Source: Takakia lepidozioides | Lineage: Eukaryota; Plantae; Bryophyta | DNA: 64,000 bases | Direction: 5' to 3' | Assembly: GCA_030704615.1 (NCBI GenBank) | Contig: CM060731.1 | Coordinates: 15,810,001 to 15,874,000, forward strand | Shown here: piece after piece, positions 1-36,000 of the stretch | How the letters are laid out: the number at the start of each line of letters is the position of its first letter | Position numbering within the stretch: position 1 is the first letter of the stretch | The notes under the pieces: generated by a model | What the model was told of the DNA's origin: nothing | The model's input: the letters and a program-made list of their open reading frames with translations, nothing else | Database searches by the model: none | Position numbers and translations under genes: made by a program

Positions 1-1579
1 CACTCCGAATTGGACAAGACGGAAGTTAGAGGTCTTCATCCAAACTGCATGCAAAGAAAATAGATTCCCCAACCTGCCCAGTTGCCTCTAGTTTATTTTA
101 TGAAATCGCACTCCGAATTGGACAAGACACGACTTATGAATGGACATTTGAGATAAATAATTGATGTGGCAGGGTCTCCAGTCTCCACCGCTTCCGACTA
201 AATATCAGAGTCATTGTCTCCCATCTTATCGACCCCGTACCGTCACAGCCCAGTGGAGCACCCAGCCACTCCGCCCATTGAATATTTGAGGACCCTACAG
301 AGGACCCATCACAAGTGTTGAAATACTGTGGTGGTGTTCCCTTCCCTGCCATGGATGGTGCTTCTTGGAGTTTGACCTGCCCTGGGTTGTTTAAATATTC
401 AATGATGTATTTTAACAGAAGTCTGTACAGTTACAGTAGAGAAGGAAGCCTCTTGCCCAAGCAACCATATCTTATGGTGTGAAGGACCTCTGTTTTTTTT
501 CTTTTTTCTTTTTCCATTCTTTCTTCATTTAAATTTAAAGAAGTGGGCACAAATTTTATATCTGCCTTCCCTTTTGGAAGATGAACAGCAGTTAGGGTAG
601 TTATTTATTGTAGGGATCAATTTCAAGGGGTCCTCCACCCTCTAAAATCTCAATAACTTACTAGCGGATCTGTCTTCAACTGCAAAGTGAGATTGTCATG
701 TTGTTGGATCTGGAATCTTCATCAAGTTCTCAACATCTTTGACCAGGCCTTATGCTTTAAAGCGCAGGAAAAACTTAGAGAAATAATTAATATTAATATT
801 TAAAGGAAAAAACCTAGTCGGATCCACCAGTCACAAATTGAATAGGACCCTTAATTTTAGCCAGAGGAGAAAATATCCTCTTCCAAAGTAACCTTGCCTT
901 ACATGTTATTTGTTTTTACCCTTATGGCTCCTGCTTGTGAATAGTGGAATATACTTTCATCCATACTTGAAAATTCATCCATTATTTTTCGCATTATTAT
1001 CATCCATTGTTTTTCAATAACAGAGGCACCTCATGGAAGTGGTTTTGAGCAAAGGAGAGGAGCTGACACCAATGGAACACACAACAAAGTGCTTAGCGAT
1101 ATTTGACATTGGTGCGTAATCTTTGCTTTACAATAAACAGGAGCAAACAATGAAAAAAACCAAACCTTGTCATGAGCAAGGCTCATGGACACCAACTAAT
1201 CCGGCAATGTTTCGATAGATAAAAAAAACTCCTCAGATCCTCAAACTTGACTGATGAATCATGTTCCTAACCACATCCCTACCTTCATCTAATATTTCAT
1301 GGCATTTTGCAGACAGAATTGGAATCTTATCACTTGGAGTACAAACTTTGCAGAGTAGAAAACAAAACCAAAAATTTGTTTGAAATTCCTAAATGACTAC
1401 AATTGAGACTAATTCTGCAGGAACATGCCTCATGATGCTGACCACCTTAACTTTTGGATCAGACTTTGGTATACCTGCTTTGTAATGATTCGGAGGGAGG
1501 GGGGAGTCCATGGCCCCTTTAAGAAGAAAACATATTTATCGAAAAACCTTGAAAACAAACATATTGATACAAGGCCTTG

Positions 1580-4500
1580 CTATACCCAAGGCTGTTCTTG
1601 CATCCATGGATCCGGGTCCACCGCTTTTCCGTGAACGTGGAGACCCCTACAACACACCAGAAAAATTGAAGATATATCAGCTTTTTGCAGTGAAGTACCC
1701 CTGGTGAGCTTAATGTACAGAGATCAGCCTTTCAGCAAATATGACTGGTATCTGGTAATACAGAGAAACATGCTGCTGGTCACACGTATGATGGACAATA
1801 TAAGGGTATTCCTTGTGATTGACCCATTCACAATGAATTTCACATTCCAAATCAAAAGAGATGCATTACTGTACATCAAAAAGAGAGAAACACACTGCGT
1901 GAGAGAGAGAATGTACTCCCAGGACCTTGTTTGCCATAGCCTTCTGGCCATAGACCGTGGTTCAGTTTGGGTGGAAAAAGAGGGAACAGACACTACCTTT
2001 CTGAGGGCTCACCCCAGTAGTGGGACTAAGCTTGGAATAACCCATTGGTTTGAGCTTTCCAGATTTCCTCTATAAATTCCCTCACACAAGCATCAATGTA
2101 TGACCTGCCCCGCAATTAGACCCCGACAGGGCCAAAGATTTAGGCTCAACCTCAAGATTGTGAAAGGTGGTTAACAGAAGTTACTGGAGACTTAGCCTGG
2201 TTAACAGTGAGGTATTGCAGCCAAGAAATAAAGTCAATAAGGTATCCAGTATTAGGCATGCAAGTCAACTGACCCTGGCATCTGCATGCTGACATGCTCT
2301 TTTTGAGCACCGAAAGCTGAATGGATTCTAAAGTTTTAGCATGGTTGGAGTTGCACTCCCACAGCACATGCGTACTCCCTGGTAGGCCTAGATATCCTGC
2401 AATTCTGCATGAATGGGTCAGCTTCTTTGCATGCAGCCTTTGATCGCCTTCTGTAAACTTTGAGGATTGGCATGCCATTGAGCTTGCCATATGCTTCATT
2501 CAGTCACTTTGGGTCAAAGAAACATAGGCGAGGGGTCACAATACCAGCATTTGGTCATAGGGACATTTATGTGCTCCAATGTCAAGTTCACCCAGGCTAC
2601 CTAATGGGCAGGGAACTAGGCCCCAAAGGGCCAGGCTTCTGCCTCCACCTCGAGATTTTCAAAGTGGTAAACAGAGGTACAGGCCCGAATCCCTTGATGG
2701 ATTTGAAGAGGGCGTTTCTCTGTGAGAGTACCCAGGACAGGAATAGAGATTGTACTCATAAGACGTTGTTTGCCGTAGCCTTGTGGCCATTGACCCCGCG
2801 CCCAGTTTGAGCGGGAACAAAAGGGACAGAACCTACCTCTGTCAGGGGCTGACGTTGGTAGTAAGACTTACCTTCATATATAGAATTAATCCGGGTTTTC
2901 CAGATATCCTCTAGAAATCCCTTCACACAAGCATCAATCTGCTGTGTGTGATTTGCCCAAAAACTAGGCCTCAGGAGGGCCTGGGCTTTTGACTCAGCCT
3001 CGAGACTTTCAAAGTTGGTAAACAGGGGTACAGGCACAATTCCCTTGATAGATTTGAAGAGAGCGTCTCTTTGGTGAGAGAACCCCGGACAGTGTATCAG
3101 AAAATGAATACTGTCTTCAGATTGCCCACACAACGGGCAATTGCACTCTCCCTTTCCTCTCTGCTTCTGTTTGCTGTTCAAAGGTAGGCTTCCTGCCCTG
3201 AGTTTAAATTTCAGTCTAGTGCCGAGAGGTAGACCCTTGAGGTCATCCAAGATGTCCTCCCCCATGTCACTGACTGGAAACAAGTTCAGGGAAGTTTTCT
3301 GCCTAACTTCATTTTCATCAGACAATCTCATGGCAACAGACATCGCTTTGGACACTACAGCCTCTAAGTCAGATTTATCCAGCAGGGTCAAGACTTGCGG
3401 ATCCAGGTCCAGGTCCTTGAGAATCCTAAGTTCTGCCAGGACTTAGCCTGTTTGACAGGGCGGTCCTGTTTCCAAGATATAGAGTCGATTAACTTAGGAT
3501 ATCTGGTGTTGGGCATATGTTGCAGCTGACCCCACCATCTGACCTTGAATTCATCTCGTCGGGAGCTTAAGGACGGAATACCAAACTCACCCCGAACAGC
3601 CACATTGGCTGTTTTGGAGCATGCTGACATACACTCCTTAAGCACCCCCACTTGAATGGATTCTAGAGACTTAGCCTGGTTGGAGTTATCAACCCATATT
3701 GCAGATCTGTACTCCAAGGCAGGTCTAATAACGCGACAAAGCATGGTTTTCTTAACCTCAGAGTTGACCCCTCTGCAGTGGAAAAATTTAGTGAGCCCCA
3801 GAGCTTTGCCCTTGCCAGTTTGAACAACTTTCCAGATATGTGCATCCCAATTACAATTGGAGGAAACTCAACGCCCAGGTAAGTGTAGGAAGGGAGGACC
3901 GGGATCTCTTGGCTACCCCACTGCCACTTAAGATCACTTCCTCCCTCTCCTCTGTCGTTGAATGCTACCACTGCACATTTGCTGACATTAGCCTCTAGCC
4001 CCCAAAGATCAAAGAATCTCTTAACTAATGGGAGCGTTATATGCCATTGAAATATACTCCAGTTCATCAGGGCTGTTTTGAATCATAGGAACAGTTTTTC
4101 CAACTGTGTCCCTCCATTCAGCAGAAGACCCCTCACTGTTAGACCTAGAAGTTCTGCCAAGGATACTGTAGTGAGTTTCAAAGGTATTGACAATGTCAAC
4201 CGATGAAGTCACCACAGCACCTTTAGTAGTCTTCAGCGCTTGTACTTGCTGACCGTTTTTCGGCTTGTACAAATGAAGGGCCAACCAGGGCCATTGAGAG
4301 AGAGAGAGAGAGAGAGAGGGACACAAACCAGTGTAGATGGGGACCCGTGGCTAACCCCGTCTCACCAACCGTGCCTATAACTTGGCCAGCTCGAACCATT
4401 TCACCCTCCCTGTGGAGGCAGCCACCCATCAACTCGTTGATTGTTGCTCACCGTCAGCCTAAAACAAATTGATAACAGCCACAAGAGTCTTCTCCGATAC

Positions 4501-7370
4501 CATACTCTTCCTTTTATGAGATGTGAAAATTCATTAGGTTCTGCAGGAATTAAACTGAGAAAGATCTCAATTCCAAGCCTTGCACTGTCATCTGAGTCAA
4601 CTCGACTCAAGGAAACAATCAAACAGAGAGGCTTGCTCCTCCTCAAAACAATGTCTCCACAGGAGCACCTTTAGCTCGCGTCAACATTTCCAGGAGGTGA
4701 TTTGTGCTGTTAACATGTTGGATAGCTCCTTCACAGTTCTAAAAGTTCCATTGTTTATCTAAAGGTTAAAATAGTTTCTAGGAAAAAGTGGAGAGAACCT
4801 ACTGCACCCAAGCAGCACTGAGATGCATCAACATGCTAGTGACACCGTGGCCATGGTCCAAGCCCACACAATTGCCATGGATCACAAATCCGTTGCTTTC
4901 TTTTCCCACCAAAGCAACCCGTCCATTTGCAGGAGCTCTCACCGGAGACCCTTCATCAGCCCCATAATCCACTCCTCTGTGATAGTACCTGCAGCAGCAT
5001 CACCACCACTTTCGGAAGCCCTTCATATAATACAGTGACTGGGGAGATGGCAGTTTCCTGGCCCCTCTTCTACATGAGCAGCCTCAGAGCCTTCTTTACG
5101 TGTGTAACAAATTTTGAACCGGCCTTTGATAACCTCAAATTTTGCATAAAGTCCATACCCCTGAGCAAAGATGCCATTGTAGAACCGCTGGAGGCCATAG
5201 CTGGTAGTCACTTCCCCCTCACTTGGCAACAAAAATGGTCCACACCAAATCTGCTCCTCAGTTTTGGTTAAGGTGAATGCCCCCACTGCTTCCTTCTCCT
5301 CACGGGTACCTATAAAACCCAGCATACAAACCAGCAGTTGACTAGCAAGCATCTTGGATCTGTGACAATATCCCCAACCACCTTCATGAATGGAATTATA
5401 ATGAGGAGCTGAGGGCCTTGTGCATGGTTGAAACACCAGAGTTCAGGCCCTTGTGCATGTTAGAAGCACCTGGGCACTATGAGGAAGCCCCTCCAGTTTG
5501 AGAGAGACTTCCCATGAGTTATGCATGAACATGCACTGAGAAAGGTGGAACACATTGTGTTTATCTTGACCATATTACGGAACAGTCGTTTGGCTACAAG
5601 GATCCCAGGTACTGGACGATACAAAGTCTTGGAGGACTTTTATATGTATGCCAAGATTCTTTCCAACAAAATCATGAACTGATAGGCCAGTTTGTAGAGT
5701 GCACGATTTACTGCGAATGTTAGATTTGCTTTTCTTCAACCAAATCGATTCAACTGGATACTCCTTATTGCACAACTCCACAATACCATTGAATGCTTTA
5801 TGCCTGCCATCAGTCACCTCCACCTAGCAGTCATGCATTGTGACAACAAACATCCAATCAGTACGAATTTGTGCAGGTAACTTTCATGAACTTGCCTGAC
5901 TGCTCAACTAGCAAGCCAACTACAGCAGCCTCGATGATAGCAAACTTAACCTCCGCGTCATCAAATGTGGGTGCATCCTTCCACGCCGTACAAAGGACAC
6001 GGTGTTCAGCTTTAAAGCTTGATAATGATTGAAGTTTTTCGGTGTTATGTCACGGTCATGAGATTCAAGAGACATTTGAAATCTACATCTGCCTTAGCTT
6101 GCAGCACGGCGTAAGGACCCCTTTGAGGAGCCTCAGATGATCCAGCTAATTGCCATAATCCCAATTTTAAGAACAGATCTTGACCTACAATCCATCGATA
6201 ACCCACCAGAAATGCATGGACCAATATGGACAGTTTCGACATTACATTGTAGGAGGGATTCAAAACTCATTGTTATTCTGTTAATTATGAAGGACAGCCT
6301 CCTAAGTACCAGCTGCATTCATCAATCATCAATGACATATGAGTCTGTAGGTATCCACATGCTTACAATGAGGGGCCGCGGCCCAGGTTTGTCCAATGGG
6401 GTGGTGGGAATGAGAGCTCGCCAAACACTGGCATCCTTTGCTGTTGGAAACACTGGAACATCCGAGCCCTCATATGAGACGTGTATCAGTGGCTCTTTCG
6501 AAATCTTCTCCCTACCAAGAAGCACCCAAGATTCATCAACAAATTTTTTGTGCTGTGTATCACACCCACTGCTATAAACCCAAAAAGAAGTCTGATGTCA
6601 AATTCTTACAGGGATTACTGAGGTAGAGTTATTGAAGGTACAGATCCAACATCTTACTCTGCCTTCCCCCTTCTTTGGAAGACTTCATTGGGAGACACCT
6701 GAGAGTCAAAACAGAACACCTGCAAGACAGATTGCCCTACAGTCTATCTGGACCTCAAACTCGCAGTGAATTGTGTCCATACATCTCCTCAAGGACAGCT
6801 CGAGTTTTGATTTTAAGAGGAGTACCTGAAAGCGAATTTGAGCTCGTCAATACAGCCCCGAGGACGTGGCACCGACACAAGAATAGCAAGAGTGTCACCC
6901 ATGGCTGGCGTCCATGACGAAACCTGCAAGTCGATAGGCCTCTGCCTAAACCCAAGTAATCGAGCAGTTCTTTTGGCAGCTTGCTGTGCAAAAGTTCCTA
7001 GCATATCCCGTGGATACAACCTTTCGTTTTGCTGGCTCTCCTTTGCAATTGGCAATCCGTCTAGAAACAGTTTTAAATCTTCTAGGGGGCCAATGCGGGC
7101 AAACGCCATATGTCGCCCCCTACTTGAGCTTGTCAGACCAGCATCGGCGGGACGCATACTCTTGAAATTGGGGAGGCTGAGATCATTGTTACATTTACGA
7201 GCTTTCCTTGGTTCTCTTATTCCCAGATTTGAGATCACATAGTTTCTCAAAATGAAGTTCACATTCTCTAGCTGCAGAATCGGGGTCCACACATTATCAA
7301 CCGCCTGGTAGGATAAGGAGGTTTGTGTGCTCGCCTGCTTCTCCTTCCGGTTTGATGCAGTAAGGGACAT
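1580..7370 (-). CDS. M23-family zinc metallopeptidase, cyanobacterial type (candidate plastid peptidoglycan endopeptidase), 7 exons, about 428 aa
   Basis: Exons with GT-AG borders join in frame (1287 nt): 7370-6826, 6511-6367, 5823-5712, 5309-5159, 4988-4803, 4409-4329, 1646-1580. The protein reads ...WRALIPTTPLDKPGPR...IWCGPFLLPSEGEVTTSYGLQRFYNGIFAQGYYHRGVDYGADEGSPVRAPANGRVALVGKESNGFVIHGNCVGLDHGHGVTSMLMHLSAAWVQEGEMVRAGQVIGTVGETGLATGPHLHWGLHVHGKAVDPDPWMQEQPWV*. Both M23 zinc motifs, HxxxD (HRGVD) and HxH (PHLH), are intact. The start codon is uncertain. Confidence 0.92.
1901..2400 (-). mobile_element. Degenerate 3' fragment of RTE-X-like LINE (family 1) in the last M23 intron
   Basis: Aligns by eye to 2745-3025 and 3440-3730, with internal deletions. 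Ends in GAGTACATTC(TC)n. Confidence 0.75.
2614..2740 (-). mobile_element. Short internal fragment of family-1 LINE
   Basis: Similar to 2962-3091 and to 53218-53346. Confidence 0.7.
2741..4292 (-). mobile_element. 5'-truncated, internally deleted non-LTR retrotransposon (RTE-X/L2-like ORF2 C-terminus), family 1
   Basis: Frameshifted ORF pieces carry late-RT/thumb motifs (WGLEANVSKC, YTYLGVEF, AVRGEFG) and a C-terminal zinc knuckle (CPLCGQSEDSIHFLIHC). The RT core is missing. The ORF stops a few bases before the 3' end. A (GA)n tract at 4296-4318 flanks the 5' side. Confidence 0.85.
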
Positions 7371-8438
7371 GAGTACACAGTTCCCACGGAAGACAAGACA
7401 AAAGCTGGGCCGCCCACATAGACCAGACGTCCTTCTCCTCTCTATCACTGCGTATAAAGTGAGTTGTTTAGGTCTGCAGTCTGCACAAGTCGTTGAAGCC
7501 TTCAAACATGGTACTCATCATGCATATATCTCCACAGCACATTCACATTCAACCAGCGTTCATAGTTTACCCGTCCACCAGTGTTTGTACTCCAAATGTA
7601 GTGTGTCAACTTCCACTCTAATTGCTTCAGGTCTAGCCTACTGGTCACCTGAGCTGTTCCTGCATCACTTGAATTTGAGATTGAGAACATTCACAACTCC
7701 CCTCCACACATTGCGCATCTACTTGCAACTCCAGTTTCTTTGTAACGTGTAGAATAGTGTTGACAGTCAACCAAGTATCATGAATGTTGTGCAGGTCATT
7801 CCTTTGGAATTGTAAGAAATTTGATTTTTGGTGAGGTGGGGTGTGATGATTTTGCTCTCCTTGCAACACCGCTAAACAAGGGGGGAAAGGGATAGGAACT
7901 ACCAGCAAACATACATCTGGAACCCAGACTATAACACCAAGATATTCTTCTGTGGAATTCCCTTATCAGCCAAGAAAATGATCCGCGACAAATGACTGCT
8001 TGTGATCTTTCGTAGCAGTCTACTACGGAAAAGGAGGATGCCACAACCCACAAAGGAGCGCAAATGAACATGGTAACACCACATAGAATCTCCAATTATA
8101 AGACTGCTGGTTAGGACGTGATGAAGCCGGATGATACACACCTACATGTACTTATGCACCATCATTACATTGCACAATTCGGAGTCTAAATCAAAGCAAG
8201 CACATAACTCGGACAACAAACTTCAAACCAGTACATACAACCTAGAGGACAACGCATTCCTATTTACAAAGAAACTTCTGAAGCTTGAGGAGTAACCCAG
8301 ACTTGTGTCCGTTAGTGGTGTCACCATCAGTAGCAGAGAGGGATAATAGAAGCAAACGTCAAAGAGACTATGACATTGCGAAGGCCCTGACCACTCTCTT
8401 TTACATGTTTCGTCGACAAATACTAGGTGACTGCAAGA

Positions 8439-18629: not shown

Positions 18630-20417
18630 CCCTCCCCCAGGTCGCTGCAAAGGTAGAGTGGAGCTAGCTCGCTTGTTGGTCTGTTCTGGCTTTTTTGATA
18701 TCTGCACAGAGTTTTTTCCAAGTTTTTTCGTGGCCTCAATTTGAATGTCAAGGTAGAGTATTTTTGCGAGGACAGTGGAAGTCATAGCAGTTTTTGTAGA
18801 GACAGTAATTTTGTCACACCTTACTTTCCACAGGTGCTAGAGGGTGACGCTTCTAAGAGTGTCAAAGACTGCACAGTGTTGGGCTTTTGTCTTAATTGTC
18901 TGGTCATAGTTCAACAGAATGGCAGTAGGGGTGAGGTGCGCGCATGTACTGGCTCCATGTCTAGTAGAATACAATGACCAGGGGCCAAAGTGCCGATGGT
19001 GCGTGACAATGGAGCAAGCAGGGGGCGAAATTGCCATTGCCATTCCTTGGGGTCAAGTCCAGGTCAGGGAGGGGTCTCCCGCATATCCAAATAAAGGTGT
19101 GATTGGCAAGCCAGTTGCGCAACGATGTGGTGAGCAGCGGGAGGGGGTTCATCTCCTTGGCGGGGAATGACCACCAGCAAACCCTAATGGGAGTGCGGGT
19201 GAAGCGTGGGATGGAGAGGGGGAGGTAGTTTTGAAGGGTAAGCCTCATTGTGTTTGTGTCACAGTGAAACTGATACCCCTTGTAAAGGTGGGTGTTTGTT
19301 TCAGTAACAAACATAATGGTGATTGTTAATAATTCCCAATGTCCAGAAGTTGGCATTGGGTGTTGCTAGGCCTGCCGTCAGCTTGGGCAACCATAGTGTA
19401 GATGCTGATTGGACTATGGTATCGTAGGATGGCGAGGCTCTGGTTTTACCTACTGTAGCTTCAATATGGTCCTTTGGGAGGAAGGCACCATTACACCAGA
19501 TGTCTTTGACCTGACGGATGCCTCTGACCTCCCAAGCAGACCATGCATTTCCTGGATTGGTTTTTTTGCTCTAGGGTGGGCGGGTTGGTATTGAGGAAAA
19601 GGAATTGGCGGAGTGTTTCTTCATAGGTGTCGGGGTTTGATTTTGTTAGATAGGGTCTGAGTTTGGACCAAGCCTGCCAGATTGATGCCCACAGGGAAGA
19701 GCCTACTGTTTTATGCTTGAAACCATTAACTATCCATCTGAAGGAGGGGTACCAGGGGACCATTTCAGGGGCGATTTGAGGGCTATGTTGTCACAAACCA
19801 CGTGTTTCCAGGCCCCTCCTTCTGGACCCAGGAACCTCGGGATCCACTTTGCGAGAGAGCCGTGATCTGAGTTTCCGGATCTATGATGCCCAGGCCTCAT
19901 TTCTTCTTTGGTAAGCAGATTTGTTTCCACGAAACCCGAGGCCTTTTCTTTTCTGAGGGGTGCCTTGCTCCCCAAACAAAGTTGCGAAGAAGCTTTTTCA
20001 TTTCCTTGATTTGTGAAGTCTTTGGTTTCCAGGCTGAGGCAAAGAACCATTGTCCAACGGATAGGACTTGGTTGGCTGCCAGGACCTTCGGGCTATGGTT
20101 GACAAGTGATGGGAGCCCCAGTAGGCCAGCTTAGTTCTAAATTTGGCTTGCGTTGCTGCAAAAATATGCTGATCCGAGAGGTTGATGCCATAAGTGTAAC
20201 TGAGTAGGGTAGTTGACTAGCCTGGTTTCAGCCACCTGAGACCTTTGTCTTGTCCCCATAATGGATCTGTTCCCAGAGGTGAGGCTGAGGTTCCTCCAAC
20301 TAGCAGGGCACATGTTTTACTCCAGTTTACTCTGAAACCATAGGCCTGGCAAAATGCTTGAAGCGAGCTGCTGGCATTATCGAGGTTGGTTTGCGTGGCC
20401 TACAAGGCCAGGAAAGT

Positions 20418-21929
20418 GTCGTCCACAAACATTGACTCCTTGATTTGTTGTGGCTGTCAGGAAAGGGGAGAGGGGACAACCCTAGCGGACGGATCGGAGA
20501 AGGGGAAAGGATTTGGAGGGCATTTAGGAGTGCTATGCCCGATGATCCTAGTAATAGTGTTTGGACCTGTGAGCAGAATGCCTTGGGGATACCAATACGA
20601 TGGAGGGCCCCAAGAAGAAAAGACCACTCAACCTTGTCGAATGTCTTCTCGAAGTCGAGGAGGAGCATAGCGATAGCCTGGTTCGTGTTTTTGGCAAAGA
20701 TTGGAATCTCCTGGGCCAAGAGCAAATTGTCCAGAATGTACCTTCCCTTAATGAAGCCCGTCTGGCTAGGGCGAATGATAGCTGGTAGGTGGCCCGGTTG
20801 CAGGCAGATTGCCAAAGCTTTGGCGATGATCTTGTAAGCCACATTTAGTAGGGTTATTGGTCTGTAATTTCCAATGTTGGTTCTGTCTCCCTTCTTTAAA
20901 AGGAGGATGATGACTCCCTGCGACAGGTGGGTTGGCATATTCCGAGTTTGAAAGATATGGTTAGCCTGCATTTCTACAAAGTCATGAGAGATATCTGTCC
21001 ACATGGTTTTGTAGAATTCTACCGGGATTCCATCCAAGCCCGGAGTTTCCCATTCTGAAGCTTGTCCAGGGCATCCTGAAGTTCCATGTCCGTAAATCCC
21101 CCCTCTAGCGAAGATGCTGCTGAGGGGTGGAGCAATCTTGGAGTGTGTTCCAGGCAGTACCGGACCTGTGTTGGTCGTCCACAAACATTGACTCCTTGAT
21201 TTGTTGTGGCTGTCAGGAAAGGGGAGAGGGGACAACCCTAGCGGACGGATCGGAGAAGGGGAAAGGATTTGGAGGGCATTTAGGAGTGCTATGCCCGATG
21301 ATCCTAGTAATAGTGTTTGGACCTGTGAGCAGAATGCCTTGGGGATACCAATACGATGGAGGGCCCCAAGAAGAAAAGACCACTCAACCTTGTCGAATGT
21401 CTTCTCGAAGTCGAGGAGGAGCATAGCGATAGCCTGGTTCGTGTTTTTGGCAAAGATTGGAATCTCCTGGGCCAAGAGCAAATTGTCCAGAATGTACCTT
21501 CCCTTAATGAAGCCCGTCTGGCTAGGGCGAATGATAGCTGGTAGGTGGCCCGGTTGCAGGCGGATTGCCAAAGCTTTGGCGATGATCTTGTAAGCCACAT
21601 TTAGTAGGGTTATTGGTCTGTAATTTCCAATGTTGGTTCTGTCTCCCTTCTTTAAAAGGAGGATGATGACTCCCTGCGACAGGTGGGTTGGCATATTCCG
21701 AGTTTGAAAGATATGGTTAGCCTGCATTTCTACAAAGTCATGAGAGATATCTGTCCACATGGTTTTGTAGAATTCTACCGGGATTCCATCCAAGCCCGGA
21801 GTTTCCCATTCTGAAGCTTGTCCAGGGCATCCTGAAGTTCCATGTCCGTAAATCCCCCCTCTAGCGAAGATGCTGTTGAGGGGTGGAGCAATCTTGGAGT
21901 GTGTTCCAGGCAGTACCGGACCTGTGTTG
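20418..21929. repeat. 756-bp near-perfect tandem duplication inside the L1 RT
   Basis: 20418-21173 is repeated at 21174-21929. I noticed only two substitutions by eye. Confidence 0.95.
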
Positions 21930-33026: not shown

Positions 33027-36000
33027 CTATCTTCCAATCAAATTTCCAATTTCTGGAGATTTTTCCCTGCAGAGGACAAAGTACTCGCCTTCTTACCGGA
33101 GAAAAATACAAACATTCCCATCTCCATCAAACAGTAAAGAGAATGACCCAGCTATTGCGGACAGTTGGTTGCTTACATGGCCATAAAGATGACTCACCTT
33201 CCAGGAAGCGGCTGAGAAGAACTATTTACAGTCCCCTTTGCCATGCTGAGTCGTCTTGCCCTGTGTTCATGCTCCTTCTCCACTCGCATGCCAGCAACCT
33301 CCTTCTCCATGGCTACTACTTCTCTACGCATTTTCTTTGCCTCAACTTCCATTGCTTTGGTCAACGTATCCACCTTCTTTGAGAGCATCTGAGAAGAGAA
33401 CAAAGTTAACTCAGGAAAGAACAGACCAAAAGACATGTCGAAGTAAATGGGTGAAATTGACAGTTGAAAGCTGTTGAATGGCAGGGTCAACAGGCTGCAA
33501 AGGAAGCTCCAAGCCAAAAGCAAGCTCACAGAATAAATGAAACACACCTCAATTGCATCATCCTTGTCCTTGAGGCTTTGATCCTTCTCATGGCTCCACT
33601 TCCTAAGAGAAATGACTTCTTTCTGCAACATATCATACAGCGCGCCTGAAACGACATCATCAACCAAATCTGGGGCTTCAACATTTCTATCCATCTTCTC
33701 CTTTGAAGGATCAACCGTCTCCAAGTTTTTGTTTACTGTGGCAGAGCCGTTCCTGGTTGACCAATGATCCTGGACTCCATTTGTATAAGCCTTGACCCTG
33801 TTCGTGCTGTCAGCGTCTAAAGATCTACCACCATCAAAGGACTTGGATGTCATCCTTCCATTTCTTAGGAGGGTGCTGCTAGCCACTGAACCCCTTAGCT
33901 GAGACATGGAGGAGCGTTGGCGTCTGGAGCCATTTGCAAGTAATTTTGATGCTTCCTCAGATCCAGTTGATGGACGTCTAGATGAACCATTCATCCCACT
34001 TCGCAATCCTTCCTCTGCACCGCTTGTCGAATGCCGCCGCATTGTGCCATTGCTGGATGCCCTTAACCCTTCCTCTAGGACCTTCAGGCGCAATTGGAGT
34101 TTCTCCTGCATATCATTAAGTCATTCAGCTAAGCAGCTCCTCTGACCTTCAGGATGATCATGCATACAAAGCCAAGAAAATGAATACTCACCTTGAGTTG
34201 TGACTCAGACTTAGCTGTCCTCTCAGTAATCGCCAATTTGTCACGAAGTTGCTGCATCTCGCCCTACACTCACAAAGTCGCACTTTAGCAAGGTTTGATA
34301 CTTGAAGTTGTCAGTTCCGGAGTATACTTGTACACATGTAGTTGGCAAAGGGAGTGGAGGAATTAGTTACCTGCATGAACCGTCTTTCTTCCAGCCATTG
34401 CTTCACTGGCATAACCTTATCATTTGCATCCTTCCATTCATTTGCCACCACAGCTGCTACTCTGTTAGCACTGATCTTAGAACGTGCAAGCTCACGCTCA
34501 AGTGTTTTCTTCCCTTCCTGCAAATGAAATACGTCAGTCACAAACAAGAGGGGTTTGGTGAAGCACCCATGTTAGAGAGGTAGCATGATTATCCTTGACT
34601 CTGTTGACTTGAGTCCTTTGTTACCCAAAACTAAAGCTTAAAAACACTACAATGTTACAGCTCCATGTTGAACTTGATGTGCAGTCTTACCATCAGTTCT
34701 TGAACTTGCCGCTGGTAGTCTCGTGCAGCATTTACAGCAGCACCACCAGCAAGCACTGCTTCTTCCAGTTCAGCAACTGTGGTGCTCAACTTCTCCACTT
34801 CAGCGACCTTTTGACGGTGCATTTTGTCCATACATTTGTTCTCTTCCTGTCGTAAAAAAGTTTATCAAAGCTGGTAAACACTCACCCCACAAAACAAATG
34901 TGCAAATATAAGGATGGAAAACCATGTCAAACAGCAGTGCCACTATCAAGACAAAGAAATAAGGGACACCAACCTGGCAAAATTCTATTTGTTTCAGTAG
35001 CTCTTGATTGCGATTCAGCAAGTCATCCACCATAGAAGCCTTCGCCTCGGCAACTTGCACTGTCCTCTCTGCTTCGAGTAGTGCAGCCTCCTTTGATTTG
35101 GTCAGACGATCCAGAGCCCTATTGTCCTCTAGCAACCTTGCAATCTGCATGAAGATACAGGTTGGAAACCAGAAAGCAGTGTAAAATCAATCAACTATGT
35201 ACAAACACACTTGAATCAAATATAATCAGATGCAAATATTTTCTCAAATCCACCGACTCTATACCACTCCAGCCACTTTATTAATAGAAACAATCACCAG
35301 GCTTTCTATTGCGTAACATGCAGCCAGTTTTAAACTCTGCCGGGAACAAGTTTCCAGTTTGACGGGCCTACTCAAAAGAAACCAAGCCAAGAAACACATA
35401 CTTCTTGACGTGAGAGCTTGATCTCGGATTGGAAAGGGGCAAGAATGGCCTCAAGTGGAGGCAGCTCTTCATCCTTCTGGGCAGCATGCACCCTTCGCAA
35501 AGTAGCCTCTGCTGCAAACTGTCCAGCTAGTGCTGCTTTCTTCTCGTCATTAATTCTCTTGACATCAAGGTTCTGTTCACACAATCAGCAGCTTAGGTCA
35601 GTTGCCAACAACCCTTATCCATTACTGCTGGAAACTTGAAGCCAGAATATGCATGCTGGGCCTTGACAACCACACCATTGCAATCAAATACTAGCAACCT
35701 CCTGAATGGCCTGCATAGTGAAATGGGCAGAGTGAAAAACCTTGTTCTGCAGGGTAATCTCGGCGGCCTTAAGTTTCTCATCAACCTTGTCCAGCTCCTC
35801 AGAAAGCTGAAAAAGATCCAACAAATATGGGAGTGAATTGGTAACCTCCTGTGATAAAGAGATCATCACCAGTTACAAAAGCACATTGCCCGTTCTGGAA
35901 AACGTTAGCAACTAACTTTTTTCTCAGAGTACAGTGCTCCATGCCAGGTCCAAATTCACAACAGAAGAGATACTGGAATGAGCCTTACCACTTCAACAGC

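Follow-up and report, generated by a model that had tools for sequence, protein, structure and literature searches.

Does the nuclear genome of the moss Takakia lepidozioides encode a complete peptidoglycan hydrolase of cyanobacterial type, and would such an enzyme differ from those already assigned to the plastid wall? The chloroplasts of mosses lie within a wall of bacterial type, and their division depends on both the synthesis and the cutting of this wall. The plastid wall-cutting enzymes named so far are DipM, MltB, and VanY. The window analyzed here is a 64,000-nt stretch of contig CM060731.1 (positions 15,810,001 to 15,874,000), in which a sequence-only reading had proposed a spliced gene for an M23 peptidase.

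Gene model and transcripts

Joining the seven exons between positions 7370 and 1580 of the minus strand yields 1287 nt, comprising 428 codons and a stop with 0 internal stops, and all introns are of the GT..AG type. This recomputation reproduces the exon count, splice sites, and frame of about 428 amino acids (aa) of the sequence-only reading. The features, in window coordinates, are as follows.

7371 to 7587, minus strand: 5' leader, transcribed; a contig reaches 7490 and continues for about 97 more letters, so the end position is approximate
6826 to 7370, minus strand: exon 1, with the ATG at 7370 and a GT donor; one contig covers it unbroken
6367 to 6511, minus strand: exon 2, N-domain with the WRALIPTTPLDKPG motif; homologues align; joints 6511/6826 and 5823/6367; 5/5 conserved columns
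5712 to 5823, minus strand: exon 3, N-domain strands; spliced contigs; 72% identity to Sphagnum here
5159 to 5309, minus strand: exon 4, linker helix and first LytM-domain strands (W.GPF...G..TS.YG..R.YNG.FA); 12/12 conserved columns; weak match to the Pgp3 model
4803 to 4988, minus strand: exon 5, encoding the leading half of the M23 core; zinc motif HxxxD (as HRGVD), DHGHG, and the catalytic histidine of MHLS; joints on both sides; 25/25 conserved columns
4329 to 4409, minus strand: exon 6, encoding the other half of the M23 core; HxH motif, present as PHLH; joint 4409/4803; 13/13 conserved columns
1648 to 4328 (2681 nt), minus strand: intron 6, occupied by two decayed pieces from the 3' end of a LINE-like retroelement, oriented like the gene
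1580 to 1646, minus strand: exon 7, C-terminal strand (W-GLHVHGKAVDP..W) and stop at 1582-1580; 81% identity to the Sphagnum C-terminus
1221 to 1579, minus strand: 3' untranslated region, its extent deduced from a contig that runs 279 letters beyond window position 1500

Exon 1 encodes a lineage-specific N-terminal extension of ~145 aa and, after it, the first part of the cyanobacterial-type N-domain, with the SSWTPAMGDTLAILVSV block. The position of the start codon agrees with that in Sphagnum, residues 81-181 aligning to Sphagnum residues 82-182, and upstream of 7370, as far as the stop at 7515-7517, no in-frame ATG occurs. The leader contains several short upstream open reading frames (ORFs), and its ATGs are all out of frame with the main ORF. 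Two exons had been reported as absent from the ORF track, and these are exons 5 and 7, whose ORFs both fall under the default 60-aa limit: that of exon 5 is given only from an internal GTG (57 aa, lacking H-R-G), and that of exon 7 is 25 aa.

Spliced contigs in two public runs, which come from two studies, make the joints of introns 1-5 directly visible. For the remaining intron, one 1509-nt contig contains exon 5, then ~79-81 nt, which matches exon 6 in length, and then exon 7, an order implying that the 2.7-kb intron at 1648-4328 is removed, as the sequence-only reading expected. The 1647/4329 joint is thus read from the order of contig pieces, its own alignment row having been removed by a repeat filter, and the pieces at exon 7 stop exactly at 1647. 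Assignment of the intron's contents to a retroelement is based on ORFs resembling a reverse transcriptase tail, internal direct repeats of 72-84%, and contig depths at the repeat level (10^3-10^4); these ORFs have no significant Pfam match (best, zf-RVT, E 0.13). A (CT)n run lies immediately past the donor (4285-4328).

Both contig-bearing runs are typed "RNA?" (presumed RNA), and no run for the species is recorded as RNA. With the runs presumed to be RNA, the Takakia M23 gene is a spliced, transcribed plant nuclear gene. The window also contains a MAP70 gene and reverse transcriptase ORFs and retroelements, indicating that this is plant nuclear DNA. Bacterial contamination, previously dismissed on account of the introns, is ruled out by these together with the spliced contigs and the plant neighbor genes.

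Domain structure and cyanobacterial affinity

Evidence for the family was gathered exon by exon or via orthologues, with the structure and the tree resting on the latter. The Pfam Peptidase_M23 model (PF01551; cutoff, 28.7 bits) is matched separately by exon 5 (46.1 bits) and exon 6 (32.8 bits), and the orthologues score 89-105 bits. The hallmarks of M23 enzymes are the H(x)nD and HxH zinc/catalytic motifs (PMC9662197), and HRGVD, PHLH, and the MHLS histidine are all present in columns that are invariant in family alignments (55 members). The protein keeps 63 of the 64 columns that are conserved in 90% or more of these members; the remaining one is explained by a slip in the alignment where exon 3 ends. 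The segments singled out by the sequence-only reading match the family consensus (WRALxPTTPLDxPG and YGVRRYYNGVFAxxY[FY]HRGVD), and the motifs that it called intact lie in exons 5 and 6, respectively. By its sequence, the protein belongs to the M23 metallopeptidases, and every metal-binding and catalytic residue is intact.

In the AlphaFold model of the Sphagnum orthologue, ~90 disordered residues (1-90) and two helices precede a beta-sandwich N-domain and a C-terminal LytM/M23 domain. Carried over from this model, the Takakia protein would consist of three parts: an extension of ~145 aa absent from bacteria (previously estimated at about 150 aa), the beta-sandwich N-domain, and the LytM/M23 zinc domain. 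The Sphagnum model also matches 2HSI, which is among the PDB relatives of exon 5 along with 3SLU and the Pgp3 entries. Its best two-domain match is Campylobacter jejuni Pgp3 (6JMY/6JMX; template modeling score, 0.79-0.83 by target), which shares the HxxxD/HxH chemistry and is also the best NCBIfam model. Despite this high similarity of fold, identity to Pgp3 is only ~22%, and the Sphagnum orthologue scores 121.8 bits against a cutoff of 300 for NF052530, so that membership in the Pgp3 family is rejected. Pgp3 is a periplasmic cell shape enzyme of a proteobacterium, whereas the plant protein adds the eukaryote-specific extension.

Orthologues occur in Sphagnum, Physcomitrium, Ceratodon, Selaginella, Diphasiastrum, Psilotum, and Cryptomeria, and in the algae Klebsormidium, Chara, Mesostigma, Chlorokybus, Chloropicon, Picocystis, and Myrmecia. 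The family thus ranges from prasinophytes to a conifer and includes lycophytes, streptophyte algae, and some chlorophytes. Homologues are collinear with all seven exons (identity to Sphagnum, 65%), and the orthologues are annotated as "uncharacterized" proteins. The lineages holding the family are those reported to retain plastid peptidoglycan genes (PMC4815162, PMC12681378), and no angiosperm member appeared in the homologue search. Marchantia and hornworts are absent among the named matches, making the fit with peptidoglycan retention imperfect.

The closest bacterial relatives are cyanobacterial. Searches of 185,579 prokaryotic species genomes returned cyanobacteria for 78 of the best 80 loci, with E values of 1e-58 to 1e-76, and matches beyond these cyanobacteria-dominated top loci fall to 1e-45. 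These relatives, annotated as "M23 family metallopeptidase" (~280-330 aa; e.g., Microcoleus WP_333061317, Geitlerinema PCC 7407, and Planktothrix), are homologous from the N-domain through the C-terminus, with 44/61 identities in exon 5, but they have a signal peptide in place of the plant extension and no introns. Neighboring genes often encode ComFB and a YkuD L,D-transpeptidase. No functional work on these cyanobacterial M23 proteins was found in the literature.

In the tree, which was obtained by a quick search with long outgroup branches and no Gloeomargarita, glaucophyte, or red algal sequences, the eukaryotic proteins form a clade (SH-aLRT, 98) that is sister to the cyanobacterial proteins (94), and both are set apart from other M23 proteins (96). 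The Takakia gene was placed by exon-wise matches rather than as a joined row of the tree, and its collinear N-domain and LytM homology, with a clade beside cyanobacteria, assign it operationally to a cyanobacterial-type two-domain M23 family. With cyanobacteria as nearest bacterial relatives and a single plant/algal sister clade, an endosymbiont-derived origin, as first proposed, is the simplest reading.

Alternatively, an early green alga could have acquired the gene later, by horizontal transfer from a cyanobacterium or some other bacterium. In favor of this, the eukaryotic clade lies beside the sampled cyanobacteria as their sister rather than nested within them, and no glaucophyte or red algal member was identified among the named matches. 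However, the single eukaryotic clade spans chlorophytes and streptophytes, placing the gain at or before the green lineage ancestor, and its branching roughly follows green plant phylogeny. Moreover, endosymbiotic transfers commonly yield a long-stemmed sister clade, and we regard a later horizontal transfer as unlikely.

Relation to DipM and predicted activity

The known enzyme most like the Takakia protein in setting is DipM, an M23 enzyme shown in 2014 to be required for moss chloroplast division (Miyagishima et al., PMC4015805). DipM (in Cyanophora, and as DipM1 and DipM2 in Physcomitrella) is likewise encoded in the nucleus, is an M23/LytM peptidoglycan hydrolase probably descended from cyanobacteria, and occurs in the same plant lineages, but it is defined by LysM repeats with LytM, whereas the Takakia protein has a Pgp3-like beta N-domain and no LysM. 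No LysM match was found in any exon (E up to 1) or in any orthologue (E up to 0.1), and the Sphagnum orthologue scores 45.2 (cutoff, 900) and 28.3 (cutoff, 740) bits against the NCBIfam DipM models and 39.3 bits (cutoff, 311) against the NlpD model. Identity with DipM is rejected on both counts, and by sequence the gene's family represents an M23 lineage separate from DipM, which is where its modest novelty sits.

The literature searched contained only the DipM paper on M23, LytM, or endopeptidases in a moss, plastid, or streptophyte context. The reviews and surveys PMC10784329, PMC4815162, and PMC12681378 make no mention of M23, and no paper was found under the orthologue accession numbers. 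Under "DipM", Table S1 of PMC4015805 also contains two additional P. patens entries without names (GI:168061355 and GI:168053993) that are unmapped to A9SYC0. The sequence-only reading had called the hydrolytic arm of plastid peptidoglycan metabolism poorly characterized, which overstated the case given DipM in 2014 (PMC4015805) and, as cited in PMC12681378, a 2021 paper on the hydrolases MltB and VanY. The family is nevertheless a genuine addition to the nuclear peptidoglycan hydrolases of cyanobacterial origin, with no study of it found in the literature searched.

The intact site and the likeness to Pgp3 and MepM predict DD-endopeptidase and/or DD-carboxypeptidase activity; Pgp3 has both (PMC6978369). 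Escherichia coli MepM and Vibrio ShyA, M23 endopeptidases of the "space-maker" kind whose active site is intact, offer a functional analogy for wall expansion, but their N-terminal domains differ from that of the plant protein and whole-chain superposition is poor. The Csd3-like domain 1, which autoinhibits ShyA, is missing from the plant protein. Membership in the MepM and ShyA equivalogs is rejected (61.3 bits against a cutoff of 341 and 50.6 bits against a cutoff of 700), and with the Sphagnum orthologue as query no NCBIfam equivalog reached its cutoff.

The site of action is less clear, and plastid targeting of the Takakia protein is putative. The N-terminus contains acidic residues and only 16-30% Ser/Thr, with no clear transit peptide composition. 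This departure from a textbook transit peptide leaves room for a role outside the plastid, either as a lysostaphin-like antibacterial enzyme, given that M23 enzymes include bacteriocins (PMC9662197), or as a peptidase on non-peptidoglycan substrates in another compartment. However, the N-terminus has no secretory signal peptide (maximum hydropathy, 0.71 versus ~2.0 in cyanobacterial relatives), and the family's distribution follows the lineages in which plastid peptidoglycan is said to persist, with no angiosperm member found in the search. P. patens DipM1 also lacks a predicted transit peptide, yet it localizes at the chloroplast surface (PMC4015805), and an extraplastidic role seems improbable.

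Slightly less probable again is that the protein acts as a noncatalytic LytM factor, like EnvC, NlpD, or Caulobacter DipM, that regulates another hydrolase. In structure, the C-terminal domain also resembles the LytM domains of EnvC and DipM well (4BH5, 7QRL), and there are weak NCBIfam matches to the EnvC, NlpD, and ActS models. But degenerate LytM factors are without metal ligands, whereas HxxxD, HxH, and the extra histidines are kept here and throughout the 55 family members. Moreover, the usual partner of such a factor is missing, as Table S1 of PMC4015805 contains no AmiA-type amidase for P. patens. An artifactual model or decaying pseudogene, which the 2.7-kb retroelement-filled intron in the catalytic domain might suggest, is highly improbable given the open frame, the GT-AG boundaries at every intron, the retention of all conserved columns, and the spliced contigs from two studies that span the gene, long intron included.

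A proposed second M23 lineage in the plastid wall

We consider it fairly probable that the gene descends from the plastid ancestor and that its product cuts or trims remnant peptidoglycan in the chloroplast envelope space, beside DipM. The product would be sent to the envelope space holding the remnant wall, where, as a DD-endopeptidase and/or DD-carboxypeptidase like Pgp3, its closest solved relative, it would cleave peptide cross-links or trim stem peptides. Such cleavage would let the plastid wall expand or be split, with the enzyme working alongside the LysM-bearing DipM and not duplicating it. A more elaborate scheme is tentative and, in our view, rather doubtful: two cyanobacterial M23 lineages would divide the labor, with DipM splitting the wall and the Pgp3-like, LysM-less enzyme serving as the space-maker for growth of the sacculus, while the helical N-terminal module of the plant protein would control targeting or latency, and the family would have been lost with the wall in angiosperms.

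The gene marks a second family of predicted M23 endopeptidases that is conserved and, by its motifs, catalytically intact, making it a candidate to supply the missing cleavage of cross-links as the plastid wall grows and a good choice for knockout. The model moss Physcomitrium patens has an unstudied annotated orthologue (XP_024380799), so this candidate is immediately testable. The family also provides a further marker of which plants still keep a plastid wall.

Gene structure and transcript evidence

The minus strand of 1400-7600 was read, and the joining of seven exons was checked by script for length and stops.

Exons of the M23 peptidase gene (script-checked model) and other window features
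7370-6826, minus strand, exon 1
6511-6367, minus strand, exon 2
5823-5712, minus strand, exon 3
5309-5159, minus strand, exon 4
4988-4803, minus strand, exon 5
4409-4329, minus strand, exon 6
1646-1580, minus strand, exon 7
33194-34111, minus strand, MAP70 exon (ORF), microtubule-associated protein 70 (PF07058, E 1e-61)
20327-21793, minus strand, 488-aa retroelement ORF with reverse transcriptase domain RVT_1 (E 1e-33)

The exons sum to 1287 nt, comprising 428 codons and a stop without internal stops, and all introns are GT...AG with compatible phases, bearing out the seven GT-AG exons and frame of about 428 aa proposed in the sequence-only reading. Its remark that two exons are missing from the ORF track fits an exon 5 ORF that begins at an internal GTG (57 aa) and an exon 7 of 25 aa, and in the HMMER search that it proposed, the Pfam Peptidase_M23 threshold of 28.7 bits was exceeded by exon 5, at 46.1 bits, and by exon 6, at 32.8 bits. 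Searched singly against Pfam, the exons contained neither LysM nor any domain other than Peptidase_M23. The MAP70 gene and the reverse transcriptase ORFs confirm that the window is plant nuclear DNA.

Contigs from two public runs (X1 and X2; two studies, one organism), which are tentatively classed as RNA, were compared with the gene over 1500-7490. With cut offsets applied, five contig joints from the two runs coincide with introns 1 to 5 (4409|4803, 4988|5159, 5309|5712, 5823|6367, and 6511|6826), the junctions for which RNA confirmation had been proposed. A 1509-letter contig (X2 record 6) covers 6825-7233, 5709-5821, 5156-5306, and 4802-4985, followed by 79 unlisted letters and then 1500-1647. 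Because the unlisted letters approximate the length of exon 6 (81 nt; the short side of the 4408|4802 joint is 78 letters in the joint table), this contig passes from exon 5 through exon 6 to exon 7, and we infer from the record coordinates, rather than from a directly read junction, that the 2681-nt intron at 1648-4328 was spliced out, as the sequence-only reading had predicted. The 1647|4329 joint has no table row of its own owing to the repeat filter, there being a (CT)n run at 4285-4330.

A lower-depth X1 contig spans 4380-4796 (intron 5) unspliced, with four differences (4562, 4622, and 4623 among the positions), and could represent a transcript that retains the intron, carried-over genomic DNA, or an allelic copy. 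Within intron 6, which interrupts the catalytic domain, a LINE-like retroelement family is represented at 1900-4270 (minus strand) by two degenerate 3' fragments, which are 72-84% alike and oriented as the gene, with a weak zf-RVT match. Contig depths reaching 10^3-10^4 over this retroelement in the two runs indicate that the family is abundant or expressed.

Distribution and cyanobacterial ancestry

Single exons or full-length database orthologues served as queries. When exon 5 was run exhaustively with HMMER against 1.84 billion representatives, 40 matches reached E ≤ 1e-10, and the best of them include proteins of Chloropicon, Chara, Mesostigma, Myrmecia, and the cyanobacterium Microcoleus. 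Queries with full-length members from the databases, as profiles or as single sequences, brought further relatives. Orthologues occur in three Sphagnum species (426-427 aa) and in Physcomitrium patens (XP_024380799/A9SYC0, annotated "uncharacterized protein"), and the family extends to Ceratodon, Selaginella, Diphasiastrum, Psilotum, and Cryptomeria, as well as to Klebsormidium ("Peptidase M23 domain protein"), Chlorokybus, and Picocystis. Cyanobacterial proteins rank directly beneath the green-lineage members, and there are no angiosperms among the best 120 matches.

When family proteins were aligned to the window by tblastn, seven collinear segments fell exactly on the seven exons, with identity highest for Sphagnum (233/356, 65%), about 60% for other mosses, 56% for Selaginella, and 53% for Cryptomeria. 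These identities mark the source as a bryophyte, probably of a moss lineage other than those named among the matches. With each exon piece entered on its own into an alignment of 55 family members, the gene keeps 63 of the 64 columns conserved at ≥90%; the lone exception, at the end of exon 3, reflects the misalignment of one residue. In the 918-aa Chara braunii protein GBG75882.1 (P0002), the M23 module is confined to residues ~560-918, and the long stretch N-terminal to it may be genuine or may result from fused gene models. In two ENA contigs from other assemblies (P0001 and P0004; 12-22 kb), ORF fragments stop where exon 5 stops and are followed by nonhomologous sequence, such that the intron position appears common to other plants.

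A scan covered 185,579 prokaryotic species, each represented by one genome, and of 598 confirmed relatives the best 80 were kept, using patterns that were derived from the family and favor close relatives but leave non-cyanobacterial pattern carriers eligible. Of these best 80 loci, 78 belong to cyanobacteria or to unnamed bins whose scores fall among theirs (E 1e-58 to 1e-76), and the other two belong to an unnamed bacterium and to a Chlorobium bin (1e-45). The maximum likelihood tree (quick search, LG+C20, 78 rows, long outgroup branches) has no glaucophyte, red algal, or Gloeomargarita rows, and the window gene is placed by exon-wise similarity rather than as a row. The 26 rows that are eukaryotic, or unlabelled but eukaryote-like, all join in one clade (SH-aLRT 98); its sister (94) is a clade that unites all 39 rows from cyanobacteria, and the two split from more distant M23 proteins (96). 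Scan and tree thus uphold the claimed cyanobacterial affinity, the eukaryotic clade lying beside the cyanobacteria and not away from them. The internal order of the eukaryotic clade is roughly chlorophytes/Mesostigma/Chlorokybus, Klebsormidium, Chara, and then land plants, with mosses together (95). A later horizontal transfer is the rival reading of these relationships, which fit one acquisition in the green-lineage ancestor or earlier, with vertical descent thereafter, and which are most simply read as endosymbiotic gene transfer.

A protein labelled Diacronema (Pavlova) lutheri (P0324) groups tightly with a Picocystis protein (P0313; SH-aLRT 100), and its label may reflect contamination. 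In cyanobacteria, a ComFB-domain gene lies next downstream on the same strand as the orthologous M23 gene in 54 of the 80 loci (e.g., L051:2921-3628:+ and L053:2973-3761:-), and a YkuD L,D-transpeptidase gene is nearby in 25 of the best 80; the cluster looks like a conserved wall-remodelling neighborhood.

Start codon and N-terminal extension

Going upstream from 7370, the in-frame stop at 7515-7517 is reached without any in-frame ATG. Exon 1 residues 81-181 align with residues 82-182 of a 427-aa Sphagnum protein, an offset of one residue that makes a start codon at 7370 consistent with that protein; the first ~80 residues are unconserved. Another contig follows exon 1 up to 7490 and continues for ~97 letters more, so the 5' leader exceeds 200 nt. 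The leader region (7371-7700, minus strand) contains about ten upstream ATGs opening short ORFs of 1-62 codons, none in the main-ORF frame, which could have a role in translational control.

The AlphaFold model of the Sphagnum orthologue has disordered residues 1-91, two helices (90-138), a beta domain (144-260), a further helix, and a high-confidence LytM domain (295-421). Moss N-termini have no hydrophobic signal peptide (maximum 19-residue hydropathy ~0.7, versus ~2.0 in cyanobacterial relatives) and by composition are not clearly transit-peptide-like. The plastid-division hydrolase DipM1 of P. patens was likewise reported to lack a clear transit peptide, yet it is processed and localises to the surface of the chloroplast (PMC4015805). 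The rival to plastid targeting is a role elsewhere in the cell or against bacteria; the family is carried by lineages in which plastid peptidoglycan genes reportedly persist (PMC4815162, PMC12681378).

Kind of enzyme and putative plastid role

NCBIfam has no equivalog for the family. Its best model is Campylobacter Pgp3 (121.8 bits versus a cutoff of 300), aligned across both domains, and the MepM, ShyA, EnvC, and NlpD models score far under their cutoffs. With the Sphagnum model, Foldseek ranks Pgp3 first (6JMY, 6JMX, and 6JN1; TM 0.79-0.83 by target, ~275 columns), followed by the Pseudomonas structural-genomics protein 2HSI, and all remaining M23 structures match via the LytM domain only. 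Pgp3 is both a DD-endopeptidase and a DD-carboxypeptidase, with its active site gated by a loop (PMC6978369). Identity with DipM was rejected: two DipM models score 45 and 28 bits versus cutoffs of 900 and 740, and LysM is absent.

H(x)nD and HxH are the defining motifs of the M23 family (PMC9662197). Both are present in the window gene along with further conserved histidines, a pattern that argues for an active enzyme and against the rival reading of a regulatory, degenerate LytM factor, for which, moreover, Table S1 of the DipM paper lists no AmiA-type amidase to activate in P. patens (PMC4015805). Against the remaining rival, a pseudogene, stand the open frame, the conserved columns that are kept, and the spliced contigs.

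DipM homologues are defined as LysM-plus-LytM proteins (Miyagishima et al. 2014, PMC4015805), with nuclear copies in Cyanophora, charophytes, P. patens, and Selaginella; DipM shows peptidoglycan hydrolase activity in zymograms, and the dipM1 dipM2 double mutant has enlarged chloroplasts (PMC4015805). A 2021 moss paper, as cited in PMC12681378, concerns MurJ, MltB, and VanY. Nuclear, cyanobacterium-derived peptidoglycan hydrolases on moss plastids, an M23 enzyme included, are already established. Unlike DipM, which has LysM, the window gene represents a different M23 lineage without LysM and with a Pgp3-like N-domain. Literature searches found no paper on this family, whose orthologues are annotated only as uncharacterised, and it may already have been seen, though not studied, among the two unnamed P. 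patens GI numbers under DipM in Table S1 of PMC4015805. The gene is an unstudied addition to a known class of nuclear peptidoglycan hydrolases.

Our analyses show that the M23 active site is intact and that the orthologue model has a two-domain Pgp3-like fold, and they establish cyanobacterial ancestry, expression, and a distribution among lineages with reported plastid peptidoglycan genes. The N-terminal extension would replace the bacterial signal peptide and bring the protein to the envelope space, where, by analogy with bacterial space-maker endopeptidases, the enzyme may cleave D-Ala-mDAP cross-links or trim stems, allowing the plastid sacculus to enlarge or split. It would complement DipM and not duplicate it; the conserved helices at ~90-138 might, speculatively, serve targeting or latency. 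The sequence-only interpretation is partly supported, in that origin and enzyme class hold, with plastid targeting and catalysis putative. For the plastid peptidoglycan field, the M23 gene is a direct candidate for knockout and assay.
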